NCBI GenBank assembly: GCA_963924565.1
Contig: OZ004608.1
Coordinates: forward strand, 10,974,001 to 11,038,000
DNA from: Ascidiella aspersa
Taxonomy: Eukaryota
Direction of reading: 5' to 3'
DNA length: 64,000 bases
The translations under genes and the position numbers were made by a program. Positions 3,301 through 52,700 of this stretch are shown here, in pieces. The notes beneath the pieces were generated by a model that saw nothing but the letters and a program-made list of their open reading frames with translations, did not search any database and was not told where the DNA came from. Every line of letters starts with the position of its first letter. Position 1 is the stretch's first letter.

Positions 3301-6300
3301 GTGTGCGCTTTGTTTCTGATTCTGTATTATACGCTTTGAAACCCGATGAAGAATTTAAGCGTGGGTTGTTTGACTTACTCTTACAGGTAGCTGTGAATGA
3401 CAACCGGGACGAGTTATGCGAAAACGCCTAAAACGTATCTTACTTTCACCGCACACATGAATAAACATGGCCGAGGAATGTAAACTGGCAAATTTCACTT
3501 TTTTTGAAAATTTATCATTTGAAAAAATGACTAGAATAGGACTAAAATCATTAAAACAATTAACCTTACATTTTGGGAAAAATAGGTAATGGACCATTTA
3601 ATGCTATTTCAGGTTTTAACTAGGCCTTAACTTGCTATAGCTTTCAAAACAACTTTACTAGCACTAACTTACAAACACATACACTCTAATCGAGTACCGT
3701 CTACCACAACACGTCGCTACAAAAACTTCCTACAAAAGGCTACTCACAAATGACAAAAAACGTAGCGCGAAATAGAGACTTACCCAGGCAGCGTAACGTC
3801 GGCGGCTCGCTGCTGCGTTGGGCTGATCGCCTCCTGCGAGGTCGTGCCGTCCTCTGCCATCCGAACCGCTCGCACCGCGTTCAAGTACTGCTTTCTTCCC
3901 ACCTATGCACGTGGAACAGCAAATGTTGGCCCAGAGTGAATGTACGTGGGACGGACTGGCGCTTTTTAATTTGGCAATGAATGTGAGCAATGCAGAGGTT
4001 TGCCAAAAGACTAAGTGTGTACACTGTTATAAAGGGTTGCCACACAGTTTTGTACAGAAAATAAGAGGCTTTTTCAATTAAAATTTATAGCATTTTGAAG
4101 ATCTAAAATTGGATTACTCAATGTTTTTTTTTAATTAATTTGAAATCAAAACAGTAATTACATGGTCAACAGAATAAAAAATAGGTGAAAGTTTCTAAAC
4201 GCACGTAATACATCATTTGAAGCCGCACATAAAATTAATTTAAAGACTAATCCAAGATTTTTGGAAAAACATAGGATTTTTAAATACCTTCTCTTATACA
4301 AATCAATTCAAAAACATTCAAAGACTTAGTGGCAACCCTGAGTGTAAGAATATTGCAAAATATGCCCCAGCTGTGGGGAGATCAAAGGGAAATCGAAAAG
4401 TCAGTTTTGCCTAAAAATTCACCCTGGCACATTAGAAAAAAAATTAAAGCTAAAAAAATGGAAAAACAAAATTAAATGGATCCAAAAGTAGTGAGTATTA
4501 TGAAGAAATCAACGACGCCTATTTAAACTAGTTTGATGGACTATTATACCCAACAGAAAGTTTTACTTTGAATCATATTATTATAGAAAAAATCTCACTA
4601 TTGTATAATAGTTTAACAAAGTTGGGGGGGGGGGAAGAAAACAGCATTGTTGTTTGCAACCTAATCCATTCCACTTACCTTGACGTATTTGACATCCGTC
4701 AGCGCAATGAGGGTGTAATCGGGGTGAAATATTTGGGGGTTGGTGGGGATTTCCGGGGCGCTAGTTTGGGATGTCGATTCAAGTTCGTGGCTGCTTTTCG
4801 TTCCACCTGAAATGATCATTAAATTGCTTGTTTTATGTAGCTTAATAATAAATTGCAAAGACAAAAAGGTCGAGTAGATCGACAGCATCTTGATTAAGAC
4901 GTTTCGATACGAGCTTGTATCATCTTCAGTTGATGTTCACTGACACATTAACTGAAGATTATACAAGCTCGTATGGAAACGTCCTAATCAAGATGCTGTC
5001 GATCTACTCGACCTTTTTGGCTTTGCAATTTATTATCAAATTGTGTTTTGTGTTTGGAGAAGGTCGATAATAATTTTACCAGTATACTTTCTAATCCACC
5101 GACCACATTTTTAAAAATTGAAAATCTCCTTTGAAAAAACAAAACGTTGGAAAAAAATATCAAACATAACAATTGGCCGAGTAAATAATTCGAAGTTATC
5201 GAGTAATTCCTAAAGGCATATTCAACGTATTTATTCAGCTGAATAGTGGCAAACCGTACAAAATATTGATTAGTTTTTTTTATAACAAGTTGCATATTTT
5301 TATTAACATCGACAGCGCGTTCGGTTCACATTTAACTTAACAAAAAATACTCAAGGTAATCGTCAGTCCAGATAAGACGAACACTCGAAAATCAGTTCGC
5401 CTCCTTTTTCCACCTGCAGCGGTGCCCTTGAAGCATGTCAAACTGGCCTAATTAAAGGCGGTCAATGGGAACATCGCTGCTTGTCGAGATCGATTAGTTT
5501 CTATTGCGCTAAACCACGGTGGGATTGGTTAAAAGGTCACGATGACGTTGGCCGCCGATAAGGCGGTTGAGTTAGACGAAAGGCAGGTTTCGATGACATG
5601 GCGATCGACAATAAATAGGGCGAACAACGTTGGCCACAGTTCAAGTTGTCGAATGATTTTGAATAGAATTCGATTACGCTGAATGCGTTGATCTTGGAAA
5701 GTTCGGCGGAAATGTAAAACGACAGAGCGAATGAGAAAGGCTGGTAAACGCGAAAAAGGTGTGGTCGCAGGATATAAACGGTCCATGTACTGAGCCACAC
5801 CAAAAAAAAATATGAACCAAAAAAATCTAGAAATAAACGAGCCATTGCGATCTCAAGTTTTTGCAATTGGTAAACAGCTCGAAATTAAACTTTAAATTGA
5901 AAGCAAAAAAGGTACGGTGGCAGCATACACGGTCTTTGCTTTGATTAAACGGTGCTTTCGCTGATGTCACACTAAATTAAGTCAAGGTCACCAATTGCGA
6001 AAACTTGAGATAACAATAGGGCGTTTATTGGGCTTGATTTTTTTGGCTGCTTAAAGATGTCATAGGGCAGAGGTGACCAACCATTTAGGAAGAGTCTTGT
6101 TTTATTAAGTAGCACATCCTATATTTTCAGAAATAAATATCACCCTGTTTCTTAATCAGACACACACACACCTTGGCTCAGCTAGATTTATTGTAGATGC
6201 TGCACACTAACAATACCAGGCTATAAATAACTCCTACTTTTGTTCACTAGGATATTTATAAAAATGCATTCAATCAGTCGAAGCCTCTATAAACCATCGA

Positions 6301-49732: not shown

Positions 49733-52700
49733 TCAGAAGTCGCCGAACTCCCGGGCGCACTTCTCCGTCGAGTGGATGCGGAGTTGTTCCTCTTCGTATT
49801 CGTCGAAGTTCTCGGTCGACCCCGGGTGCTTGAACTTGGGGATGAAGGGTGCTTCCACCTGGACGATTTAAAAAAAGTACTTTACAATAAACTAATTTAA
49901 CTAACTGAAAGATGCTGAAGATGATATAAGCTGATTCATTTACTGAAGATGATGCAAGCTCGTATCGAATCGTCTTAATCAAGATGATGTCGATCTGCTC
50001 GACCTTTTTGGCTTTGCAATTCATTATCAAGCTGTTAAAGCGGTTGGTGCTTTATTGCGTAGCTGCGACATGGTTAAGTTAAGGCAAATAGGTAGCAAAA
50101 GCACAAACACGCGTTTATAAATGTACAATTGCGAAATTGGAAAAAAGGCGATCTGCACGCTTCGATGAACGTGGATGCACATCGGTAGGTTCGCTACACT
50201 GTATTACATATCCGTACATACTGTACCCAACAATTTAATTTATTTTTTTAATGAATAAACAAAATAATGCATTTTTTTAGTGTTTTACAATAATGTAAAA
50301 CCTCTACCTGGACGATTTAAAGAAATATATTTTATGAAAACTGCAAATCATTTTTTTAATAGAGTATTTCACAACAATGCAAATTAATTTTCAAGTGTTT
50401 CACAATAATGCAAAACCTCTACCTGGACATTTTAAAGAAATGTATTTTTACGAAAACTGCAAATTATTTTTTTTTAAAAAGATGCAAATATTTTTCATTT
50501 GAAATAAAATTGACGGTCATAATAAGAATATCAAAGTCTACACAGAAATAGGTTTTATTTTGAACGTTTGAATATTTCTTTGGGAACTTGAATAAAGAGT
50601 TATTGGAAACGTTTAAAACGCCACCTACATCTGTATGGGCTTTGATACGCCTCACTACAACCTCCAGACATTATGCTCCAAATGACATTGAAGTTGCTAC
50701 ATTACACTACTGACAGAACAAAGTTTTATTGCATATAGCTAAGTAAAACGTCCGGGAATAGAGAAATTTGATTGTCAGTCGATGCTGTGAAATAACTTGC
50801 ACATTTTCGACGACAAAATTTTATTTCGGTAGGATAGTTTTAATACCCAAAGTTATTCATCCAGCCGGACTTTCTGTATTTTTTTCCTAATATATTTTGT
50901 CCAGACCTGTTTGGTGAATAAAATTTGTGTACAAAACTAAAAAATAACGAATATTACCTCATATGACTACACAGCGAATTCAATTAAACAAAATCATTCA
51001 ATGTAACCGAAGACCTGAATGAACTGTTCTGAAGGTATTAAAAACATAAAGTTTATAAAAATATAAACTACGCGAAGGTGGTGGCAAGTCTTTCAACTGT
51101 ATCTTTTATACAACTTTTGTTTTTTATTGTAGTGATACCAAATGGACTACTATAAAAACAATTTGAAATCTTAGAACTTAATTTTGACTTACTACTAAGG
51201 CAAGGTGTAGTCTAGTGAAATATAAGTTTTAATCTTAAGCAATCATAATAACAACTGTAAAAAAAAAATAATTCGGATAAAAACAAACAACATGTGTCCA
51301 AAAAAAATTTTTTTTTTTTCGGGCCACATAAATATTATGTGATATGTAAGTGGATTTAACAAAATAATTCCAAGCTTTTAAAACAAAATATTGAAACATA
51401 TTGGGTTGATTGTGATACGATAGGATTCTGATTTAAATAAATGACACCATTGTTTAGGCACAATAAGTTATTTTTGTATCAATAGAAACAATATACCAAG
51501 CAGGATGTCATCTAACGAAGTTGGTACTGTAAGTATAGAAGAAAATGGCTACGTTAGCTACACATTATGACCGGTAATGAAACAACCATTTGTGCGTTAA
51601 AGCCATTTAAAGATACTAAAATATTTATGGACGTTTCCAAAAAATGATAAATTAACATTCAAGTGGTTAATTTACCACGTCATTCAACTTTTGTATACCA
51701 AAACATTCGTAGATGAGAGAAAAAACAAAGACATATTTATAAAGAAAAGAAACAAAAGCCTGGCACAAAATTGCCATGTACTATTATTTCAAAAGCAGTA
51801 TCATCCGTGTAGGATAATCAACAACAGATTAGGAATGTCGACTGCTATAGCCTCTACCTGATATATACTCCCTAATAAAACGGAAATTCTAGAGCATACC
51901 TACTACCCACGGTTCTGGGCCACTGCTCGTGAAAGCACGACCAACCAGCGTATTAAAGGATTTCGCAGAACTTAACGCTAAACATTAGGGGTTCAGTGGA
52001 AAACGCGTTCACAGAATTTTTACAACATAGGTAATAATAACTGGGATCTAAAAATAGGCTACTTATCAGAAAAAGCCGGCCTTTAATTAAATTGTTTTTT
52101 TTATAAATTAGAATCCTAATTTTTTAATTCACATGTCAGTTTTGCCGTACTTTGCAATTTAGTCGTATTCGCAATGTATACATAAGGTTAGTTTTATTTT
52201 ATCTTTTTCGGACTAGAACATTGTAACAAATAGTTAACTGGAGTAACTAGCCTAATAAACACATTCCACTTTTAGAACGTGATGCCATTAACACAACGTG
52301 TCGTTTGCCCACTGCAGACACACTTCATTGCGAGGTTTAACATGTTTAGCATAAGAGGAGTGAAAGCAGCTCTGGTGTTTTTTAGGTGTGTAATAATAAT
52401 GCCAACGTTTACCTTTCTTTGATAAACGGCGATCCAGTCGATTGATTGGAACCACTTGTGGTTCTTGATGTCGGCCACCCCGTTCTTTAGGTTGCCATAC
52501 CTCTTGGTGAGGTCGACCTGAAGAAGATTGCGAAGAAGGTCCTTCAGCTCCGACGTGAAGTGAGAAGGGAATCGAACCTGGTAATGGCGAATTTACGTGG
52601 TTATTTCTTGACTTGGGTGAGAAAATTTTGTGGCACCCCTTATTTAGACTTAAACAACTAGATTTATTTTAGCTTTTTTAAATAAGATTGGAATTAAAAT

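Follow-up and report, generated by a model that had tools for sequence, protein, structure and literature searches.

Minimal hammerhead motifs in an Ascidiella aspersa window probably mark truncated tails of Penelope-like elements

Results

The window analysed here, a 64,000-nt stretch of the Ascidiella aspersa genome, contains exons of a CNNM gene and of a ROR-like receptor kinase gene, together with copies of three repeat families (A, B and C) in which seven hammerhead motifs are embedded (Table 1). Families A and B each form a palindrome, with an inverted repeat of 95 nt that is 94% complementary in family A (4842-4936 against 4945-5039) and one that is 81% complementary in family B (40439-40501 against 40522-40584). 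The family C copy keeps about 70 nt of the end of an endonuclease ORF and has lost about 50 nt internally, near 47148-47152. The family A insertion ends 26 nt from the probable 3' splice site (tttcag|G) of the CNNM exon. A first-pass annotation of the window had described the motifs as intronic. This holds for five of the seven, which lie between recognisable exons of the CNNM and ROR-like kinase genes, but the family C motif and the third family A copy lie past the last recognisable exon, and their intronic status is unproven.

Table 1. Hammerhead motifs, the repeat copies that carry them and neighbouring host exons in the window
Feature	Positions	Strand	Remarks
CNNM exon (C-terminal CNBH domain)	4673..4806	minus	context only
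Family A tail, palindrome left arm	4835..4936	minus	carries GCTACAT, 7 nt from the optional tail; sense to CNNM pre-mRNA
Family A left-arm motif	4893-4934	minus	intact core CUGAAGA-U-GAUAC/GUAUC-GAAA-CG-UC; stem I weakened by CAUCAA variant; predicted cut after C at 4898
Family A tail, palindrome right arm	4945..5039	plus	ends ...ATTATCAA, without tail
Family A right-arm motif	4947-4988	plus	intact core; 10.1/11.1 is U-G, 1.1 is C; predicted cut after C at 4983
ROR-like receptor kinase exons	37929..42764	plus	context; bracket the family B insertions
ROR-like Fz domain	37929-38447	plus	
Family B tail, left arm of old palindrome	40413..40515	minus	
Family B left-arm motif	40455-40492	minus	core broken: CUAAUGA (G5 to A)
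Family B tail, palindrome right arm	40519..40613	plus	sense to ROR-like pre-mRNA
Family B right-arm motif	40531-40568	plus	intact core CUGAUGA-A-...-GAAA-GC-UU; stem II down to 3 bp; predicted cut after U at 40563
ROR-like kinase pieces	41584-41778, 42486-42764	plus	
Family B tail, single copy	42246..42329	minus	between two kinase exons; antisense to host gene
Single family B motif	42288-42325	minus	no pair at 10.1/11.1; A13 to G breaks the core (GGAA)
Family C PLE 3' end	47048..47308	plus	5'-truncated inside endonuclease ORF end
Family C motif	47171-47214	plus	core broken: CUGAUAA (G8 to A)
Family A tail, single 5'-truncated copy	49942..50033	plus	
Third family A motif	49938-49979	plus	core broken: GAAU for GAAA (A15.1 to U)

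All seven motifs were recovered exactly where the first-pass annotation had placed them, although the complete architecture it ascribed to each holds for only three; in each of the remaining four, which are homologous copies, one core position is substituted. The whole window was searched with our own descriptor, which requires at least four of five pairs in stem I, CUGANGA, zero or one inserted nucleotide, a stem II of at least 3 bp and GAAA, followed by a self-complementary dinucleotide and then U and H. It returned exactly the three intact cores, namely both arms of the family A palindrome and the right arm of the family B palindrome, against a mean expectation of 0.003 motifs (maximum 1) over 300 dinucleotide shuffles of the window. 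Under a stricter descriptor (stem II of at least 4 bp, stem I with at least five of six pairs) no window copy passes; the consensus sequences of all three families do. The Rfam hammerhead models gave no match in the window, the sampled loci or the extra families, even at E values up to 10. This silence is expected, because the motifs have no closed helix III, which the Rfam models include, and it says nothing against minimal hammerhead ribozymes (min-HHRs), whose original discovery also relied on a dedicated descriptor (PMC4209133). Rfam output consisted only of miRNA-like hairpin matches, all below gathering scores, which are due to the palindromes. A covariance model built from families A and C recovers every A and C copy in the window (four copies) and gives the intact family B copy only 9.6 bits (E ~9.5); it is too sequence-specific to serve as a general model of hammerheads in Penelope-like elements (PLEs). 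Its weak matches at 14791-14823 and 40650-40693, without stem II or a GAAA box, were rejected as chance.

Across the genome, the core pattern CTGANGAN{11,22}GAAASSTH has 5061 matches, compared with 186 for the reversed control (27-fold), and together with the shuffles this control led us to reject a chance origin of the motifs. The arms are high-copy repeats, with 2326 first-look candidates for family A, 746 for family B and 768 for family C, and the core is intact in 35/43, 26/36 and 26/31 of the sampled copies, respectively. All three consensus sequences contain the catalytic core C3 U4 G5 A6 N7 G8 A9 ... G12 A13 A14 A15.1 ... U16.1 H17, and in its common form each family matches the textbook minimal type I hammerhead. 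Stem pairs were counted by script at fixed positions, with a fixed 1-nt insert, in 23 representatives of many families; a MAFFT alignment of the three families misaligned family B and was left out of this counting. The first four pairs of stem II are paired in 89% of cases, against 34-64% with a slid partner, and stem I in 79%, against 21-40%, with two to six pair types at each stem position. Among the representatives, 16 have A as the inserted nucleotide, six U and one G; at 10.1/11.1, 19 have G-C and three G-U; and positions 15.2-16.2 are CG in 22 and GC in 1, the search pattern having also allowed CC and GG. Stem covariation and core conservation, which had been named as a check on the proposal, are thus both found, and the three families, unrelated in sequence, do keep stems that pair and co-vary across families. 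Judged by their sequence, the seven are real minimal hammerhead ribozyme motifs.

Upstream of the motifs, longer copies elsewhere in the genome carry coding sequence. In family A, an ORF (L020, 802-1410) that carries VVYKLSCSCGASYIGQTRRNLLTRVKEH stops about 95 nt before the motif, and at a second locus (L091, 5454-6701) a match to RVT_1 at 2.5e-9, above cutoff, is followed by the same endonuclease. The family C reverse transcriptase (RT) and endonuclease (EN), present at three loci (L062, L080 and L081) directly upstream of the tail, are 47-58% identical in amino acids to those of family A; the family C endonuclease matches Pfam GIY-YIG (PF01541) at 2.1e-7, above cutoff, and that of family A is 52% identical to it and carries the GIY-YIG motif. 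For family B, the remnant about 190 nt upstream of the motif (L052:1091-1333) represents the C-terminal half of a GIY-YIG domain, with an E value of 0.007 that lies below the Pfam cutoff. The GIY-YIG endonuclease follows the RT on its C-terminal side and shares its orientation, and it is this domain order, with the GIY-YIG domain itself, that suggests membership of the PLE RT clade. Look-alikes of the RT are animal RT clusters with RVT_1, HTH_animal and DUF8422, and serve as a lead only.

Within the window there is no tblastn match at E<1e-3 to the family A query proteins, as the first-pass annotation had noted in reporting neither RT nor GIY-YIG there. Its assignment of the motifs to minimal type I hammerheads of PLEs is borne out; the proposed separate non-autonomous class or "system" is not, given the RT and EN ORFs of the longer copies. 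The motifs very probably belong to decaying, 5'-truncated 3' tails of three endonuclease-bearing PLE families. In all likelihood the window holds five independent dead-on-arrival insertions, each reduced to the 3' untranslated tail of about 85-260 bp. Judging by sequence, what remains in the window are inert relics, and a core nucleotide has been lost in four of the seven motifs.

The structure of such insertions was examined at 30 family A loci, a small sample picked as best matches without regard to gene context. Thirteen have an adjoining inverted partner with variable 5' truncation, beginning anywhere from arm position 4 to 80, and a common 3' end position; seven have longer head-to-head arms, and nine are single arms whose 5' ends are spread over 400 nt. 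The 3' ends occur with or without an extension of about 30 nt, usually on one arm only. Direct pseudo-LTR tandems were found only at loci outside the window (for example L092).

Discussion

The palindromes are not, as had seemed possible, a new arrangement. An inverted, 5'-truncated copy adjoining the insertion, with a tail of 30-40 bp at one end, is the published standard of PLE insertion (PMC8557442), and opposite-strand pairs of hammerheads were noted in 2014 (PMC4209133). In a single study, done in vitro with a lizard element, both target strands were cleaved and extended, and two RT start sites explain the tail (PMC11167929). Following this published work, the PLE protein would cut both target strands and reverse-transcribe from both, starting at internal sites near the RNA's 3' end. 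Extension of both strands would give a palindrome with a tail at one end, made up of two 5'-truncated copies that meet head to head and point their 3' ends away from each other. The hammerheads of paired or tandem master copies may associate by way of their palindromic dinucleotide, cleave weakly as dimers and process the element RNA. Published PLE min-HHRs cleave weakly and only as dimers (PMC4209133). Catalytic mutants had no effect on insertion in vitro, and no RNA-seq ends were found at the hammerhead cut site (PMC11167929).

The first-pass annotation went further and saw in the palindrome a possible built-in safety catch that makes intronic insertion tolerable, a transcript carrying a ribozyme together with its own antisense. 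As a selected function, this would mean that the antisense arm is transcribed first and the hairpin masks the hammerhead, allowing intronic insertions to persist. The geometry is right: each palindrome transcript carries the antisense arm first and the sense ribozyme second, the left arm lying on the minus strand and the right arm on the plus strand in both palindromes. Both are also intronic, with an intact core in the host-sense arm, and the predicted hairpins (-140.6/-141.7 kcal/mol for family A, -68.5/-63.6 for family B) compare with -3.7 to -9.3 for the ribozyme folds. A read-through transcript of either palindrome is thus predicted to form a long hairpin in which the ribozyme is buried. 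Such masking, however, is in these predictions trivially true as physics and follows from any palindrome, and PLE integration gives the same structure at any site of insertion (PMC8557442). Under a sampling blind to gene context, about two thirds of the family A loci are palindromic, and single-arm copies, one of them intronic, are also present in the window. Furthermore, no self-cleavage of single min-HHRs could be detected in vitro (PMC4209133), and there would therefore be little to restrain. We consider a selected safety catch very unlikely. That the palindromes are more than integration scars, whether tolerated in introns through antisense masking, serving as a source of small RNAs that silence the family, or having arms copied from two RNAs by a dimeric PLE enzyme, also seems unlikely to us. 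The two-template idea arises because the arms differ at recurrent subfamily-marker sites in four of six family A palindromes, and whether two arms stem from different RNA templates is a point of wider interest.

Short non-autonomous elements, akin to animal retrozymes or SINEs and mobilised in trans by PLEs, would explain why the family A arm has 2326 candidates and the segment 100-300 nt upstream only 184, and a 2026 preprint derives animal retrozymes from PLE pLTRs (doi 10.64898/2026.07.22.740005). However, heavy 5' truncation has the same outcome, an excess of tails, and the 5' ends of the copies are scattered continuously, running unbroken into the endonuclease ORF; none of the copies examined showed a discrete short unit with a 5' end of its own, and there were no head-to-tail tandem units in the window, which makes this reading quite improbable. 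The inverted repeats, long and nearly perfect around a short spacer, in which Rfam sees only generic, sub-threshold miRNA-like hairpins, could also suggest foldback or MITE-type DNA transposons with hammerhead-like strings by chance. This identity was rejected, its probability being close to nil, on the variable truncation of one arm, the many single-arm copies and the continuation of the arms into RT/GIY-YIG ORFs, as well as the 27-fold excess of the core over the genome control and the covariation of stems across families.

Several known systems come close. The min-HHRs of metazoan PLEs (Cervera and De la Pena, 2014, PMC4209133) share the CUGANGA...GAAA core, the extra unpaired nucleotide between A9 and 10.1, G10.1-C11.1, a short, 4-6 bp helix I, a helix II no longer than 8 bp, and the absence of loop 3 with a self-complementary 15.2-16.2 that implies dimers. 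They too are mostly single motifs from truncated elements, with some opposite-strand pairs 100-700 bp apart. Only the sequences and the host genome differ, our motifs being known from sequence, and the common form of family C has G-U at 10.1/11.1. Standard PLE insertions (Evgen'ev and Arkhipova, 2005; Craig et al., 2021, PMC8557442; Mob DNA 2024, PMC11167929) likewise show high 5' truncation, with an inverted 5'-truncated copy next to the 5' end; one end may carry a tail of 30-40 bp, the RT precedes a C-terminal GIY-YIG endonuclease, and the hammerhead is in the terminal repeat region. In the window only short arms are left, hence the look of a free-standing palindrome. MITEs and foldback elements are similarly short, non-coding, palindromic, high-copy and often intronic, but have fixed terminal inverted repeats, target-site duplications and a DNA-transposon origin, whereas the arms here are variably truncated retroelement tails. 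In L1 twin priming, the second strand is primed in the course of target-primed reverse transcription, and inverted, 5'-truncated copies result; the enzyme family is another and the inversion lies within one copy, so that the likeness to PLE palindromes is an analogy of mechanism only. Animal retrozymes are reportedly head-to-tail tandem units with canonical loop-loop hammerheads and circular RNAs, whereas the window motifs are of the minimal variant and form no direct tandem units. Indeed, the four A/C copies are all that the A and C covariance model finds in the window, with no direct tandem among them, and the B copies comprise one inverted pair and one distant copy. Like our repeats, non-LTR retrozymes are non-coding animal repeats with type I hammerheads, probably related to PLE terminal repeats (Cervera and De la Pena, 2020, PMC7229834).

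The elements are thus of a known kind and matter little beyond annotation. There they should be masked as Penelope-like elements, as their hairpins could otherwise pass for miRNA precursors, and their motifs for ribozymes of the host. The genome contains roughly five thousand minimal hammerhead cores, in the three window families and at least six to eight further ones, and the window copies are clean examples of the PLE insertion signature. Of wider interest is a possible effect of intronic palindromes on splicing, one of them ending so near the probable CNNM acceptor.

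Hammerhead motifs in the window and in the genome

All seven hammerhead motifs placed by the first-pass annotation, in three families of unrelated sequence (A, B and C), were confirmed at their coordinates, and its observation of hammerhead motifs was right overall. Our own descriptor, comprising an intact core, 0-1 inserted nucleotide, at least 3 bp in stem II, helix III replaced by a self-complementary dinucleotide and at least 4/5 pairs in stem I, is passed by three motifs in the 64 kb, against a chance expectation of 0.003 (mean of 300 dinucleotide-preserving shuffles). In these three, cleavage would be expected directly after H17, at 4898 on the minus strand and at 4983 and 40563 on the plus strand. 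The other four are plainly homologous, and each has a single substitution in the core; the proposed architecture thus stands with an intact core in three of the seven but with a substituted core in the rest. None of the window copies passes a stricter descriptor, whereas the family consensus sequences do (3/3), which indicates that motifs perfect at the family level are represented in the window by decaying copies.

Features of the window and of the motif families (positions are those of the window unless a contig or locus is named)
Feature	Position	Strand	Detail
CNNM gene, N-terminal domain	13790-14194	-	
CNNM gene, CNBH exons	9429-9725 and ~4673-4806	-	
ROR-like receptor kinase, Fz	37929-38447	+	
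ROR-like receptor kinase, kinase pieces	41584-41778 and 42486-42764	+	
Family A motif	4893-4934	-	passes own descriptor
Family A motif	4947-4988	+	passes own descriptor
Family A third motif	49938-49979	+	core substitution A15.1U
Family B motif	40455-40492	-	core substitution G5A
Family B motif	40531-40568	+	passes own descriptor
Family B motif	42288-42325	-	core substitution A13G
Family C motif	47171-47214	+	core substitution G8A
Family A palindrome, arms	4842-4936 / 4945-5039		95 nt, 94% complementary, 8-nt spacer
Family B palindrome, arms	40439-40501 / 40522-40584		81% complementary
Family A palindromes tied to the arm-difference observation	window 4846-5039; L005, L009, L012		
Clustered family C fragments	C1:59068; C2:53681-1031104; C3:278484-361856 and 39216783-39430882; C4:59095; C5:173077-268435; C9:356089		
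Family A commonest form			CAUUAA-CUGAAGA-U-GAUAC(aagcuc)GUAUC-GAAA-CG-U-C-UUAAUC
Family B commonest form			UUUGAC-CUGAUGA-A-GCAC(gguu)GUGC-GAAA-GC-U-U-GUCAAG
Family C commonest form			UUUACA-CUGAUGA-U-GGCA(ugaguuau)UGCU-GAAA-CG-U-C-UGUAAA

The bare pattern CTGANGAN{11,22}GAAASSTH, which included none of the pairing, has 5061 matches in the genome compared with 186 for the backwards pattern, and the matches listed include many further families of minimal hammerhead motifs (min-HHRs). At least six to eight of these lie on chromosome C1 (loci L093-L112), with a stem II of up to 8 bp (e.g., GGCAACUU/AGGUUGCC) and a stem I of 3-5 bp, and several of their motifs form (-,+) pairs 90-250 nt apart; min-HHR pairs on opposite strands, 100-700 bp apart, have already been noted (PMC4209133). 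For a pairing test, 20 of the pattern matches were fetched and 23 sequences scored, with a single inserted nucleotide imposed on all and no optimisation. Over the first four pairs, stem II is 89% paired compared with 34-64% when the partner is slid, and stem I 79% compared with 21-40%; each stem position has two to six pair types, in agreement with the earlier claim that the stems differ between families yet still pair. Of the 23 sequences, 22 have A or U as the inserted nucleotide, 19 have G-C and 3 have G-U at 10.1/11.1, and all 23 have CG or GC at 15.2-16.2, CC and GG also being permitted by the pattern. The four features that Cervera and De la Pena cited against a chance origin for the min-HHRs of Penelope-like elements (PLEs) (PMC4209133) are all present in the motifs here.

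The Rfam hammerhead models gave no match in the window, the loci or the further families, which we attribute to the motifs having no closed helix III. The palindromes, in which two copies lie head to head, give sub-threshold matches to several Rfam miRNA precursor models (33-36 bits against gathering scores of 59-100; window 4898-4983 and 40464-40558), and could be mis-annotated as miRNA genes.

The motif families are tails of Penelope-like elements

Each arm, or single copy of a tail, is repeated in high copy number across the 308.6-Mb genome, with 2326, 746 and 768 first-look candidate copies for families A, B and C, respectively, in a genome search. The best-matching copies are ~95% identical to the window copy in family A and 92-94% in family C, but only 78-85% in family B, consistent with greater age of either the family or the window copy.

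Longer copies extend upstream into coding sequence. At the family A locus L020, an ORF (802-1410) that ends ~95 nt before the motif contains VVYKLSCSCGASYIGQTRRNLLTRVKEH, a GIY-YIG endonuclease signature, and at L091 a 415-aa ORF just upstream matches RVT_1 at 2.5e-9, with the same endonuclease coming next. Family C loci likewise carry a reverse transcriptase (RT) and endonuclease directly upstream of the tail, at 47-58% amino-acid identity to those of family A, the endonuclease matching Pfam GIY-YIG at 2.1e-7. In the longest copies of family B, the C-terminal half of a GIY-YIG domain lies ~190 nt upstream of the motif, a match (E=0.007) that falls short of the cutoff. Endonuclease-bearing PLEs are defined by an RT with a GIY-YIG endonuclease C-terminal to it (PMC8557442), and on this domain layout the assignment of the families to PLEs is right, as the first-pass annotation had proposed.

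Its further descriptions, a ribozyme "system" and "non-autonomous elements", are not supported, the latter given that the arms run on into retroelement ORFs in longer copies. It had also reported no RT/GIY-YIG ORF in the window; indeed, a tblastn search with the RT and endonuclease ORFs of family A, taken from L091 and L020, found no match there at E<1e-3, but the window's family C copy keeps ~70 nt of the ORF end.

In family C, many of the tail fragments have the same flanking sequence as one another on both sides and are clustered within ~1 Mb of contig ends (L065-L075, L085-L090); a subtelomeric repeat unit seems to have captured a PLE tail whose hammerhead core is intact.

Palindromes and insertion structure

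Two palindromes are present in the window, the family B one being older. In a sample of 30 family A loci, including the window's own and with one locus counted twice (L018/L019), 13/30 have an adjacent inverted partner with a variable 5' cut (starting at arm position 4 to 80) and a fixed 3' end, 7/30 have longer arms head to head, and 9/30 are single arms with 5' ends spread across ~400 nt. The 3' end takes two forms, ...ATTATCAA or the same plus ~30 nt beginning GCTACATTACAGATCC... (L012, L013, L020 and other family A loci), and as a rule just one of the two arms bears the extension; stubs of it persist in the window's family A copies (7 nt, 4835-4841; 3 nt, 50031-50033).

In vitro, the Anolis PLE protein cleaves and extends both target strands, and reverse transcription starts internally at two positions, separated by a distance that matches the tail (PMC11167929, 2024). 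Priming on both strands would yield a pair of truncated copies whose 3' ends face outward, which matches the arms diverging from the centre as originally described, and the palindrome is not supported as a novel arrangement. A reading of the palindromes as MITEs fails, since the arms are not fixed terminal repeats and continue into the retroelement ORFs.

The first-pass annotation further suggested that the palindrome acts as a safety catch, the ribozyme being masked by its own antisense. The geometry agrees, as an antisense arm precedes the sense ribozyme in either transcript, and so do the thermodynamics, with predicted hairpins (-140.6/-141.7 kcal/mol for A and -68.5/-63.6 for B) far below the hammerhead folds (-3.7 to -9.3). 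However, the same would apply to any palindrome, integration itself produces the arrangement, and in a sampling blind to gene context about two thirds of family A insertions are palindromic. Furthermore, single min-HHRs are reported to be inactive and dimers to cleave weakly (PMC4209133). Selection for masking is therefore unlikely. In the Anolis PLE, catalytic mutants leave insertion in vitro unaffected, and RNA reads were reported to show no pile-up of ends at the cut site (PMC11167929).

At arm positions 6, 53 and 61, which are recurrent subfamily-marker sites, the arms differ in 4/6 full-arm family A palindromes, a small sample of loci chosen with bias, which hints that the two arms were copied from separate RNA molecules. 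At L092:6252-7567, family A copies form a complex nest of a plus copy, an abutting inverted copy without a tail and, 246 nt on, a second inverted copy with a tail, an example of tandem/inverted PLE clusters.

Host-gene context

The proposed intronic placement holds for the family A palindrome, in a CNNM intron, and for the three family B motifs, between exons of the ROR-like kinase; motif C and the third family A copy lie past the last recognisable exon. A probable 3' splice site, tttcag|G (minus strand; 4807-4841), follows 26 nt after the left end of the family A palindrome, whose 95-bp hairpin occupies the expected branch-point position of the intron. A 327-aa open frame (44157-45140, plus strand) has no Pfam match and is overlapped by long opposite-strand ORFs; it may belong to the ROR-like gene as its C-terminal tail exon, or be low-complexity sequence.
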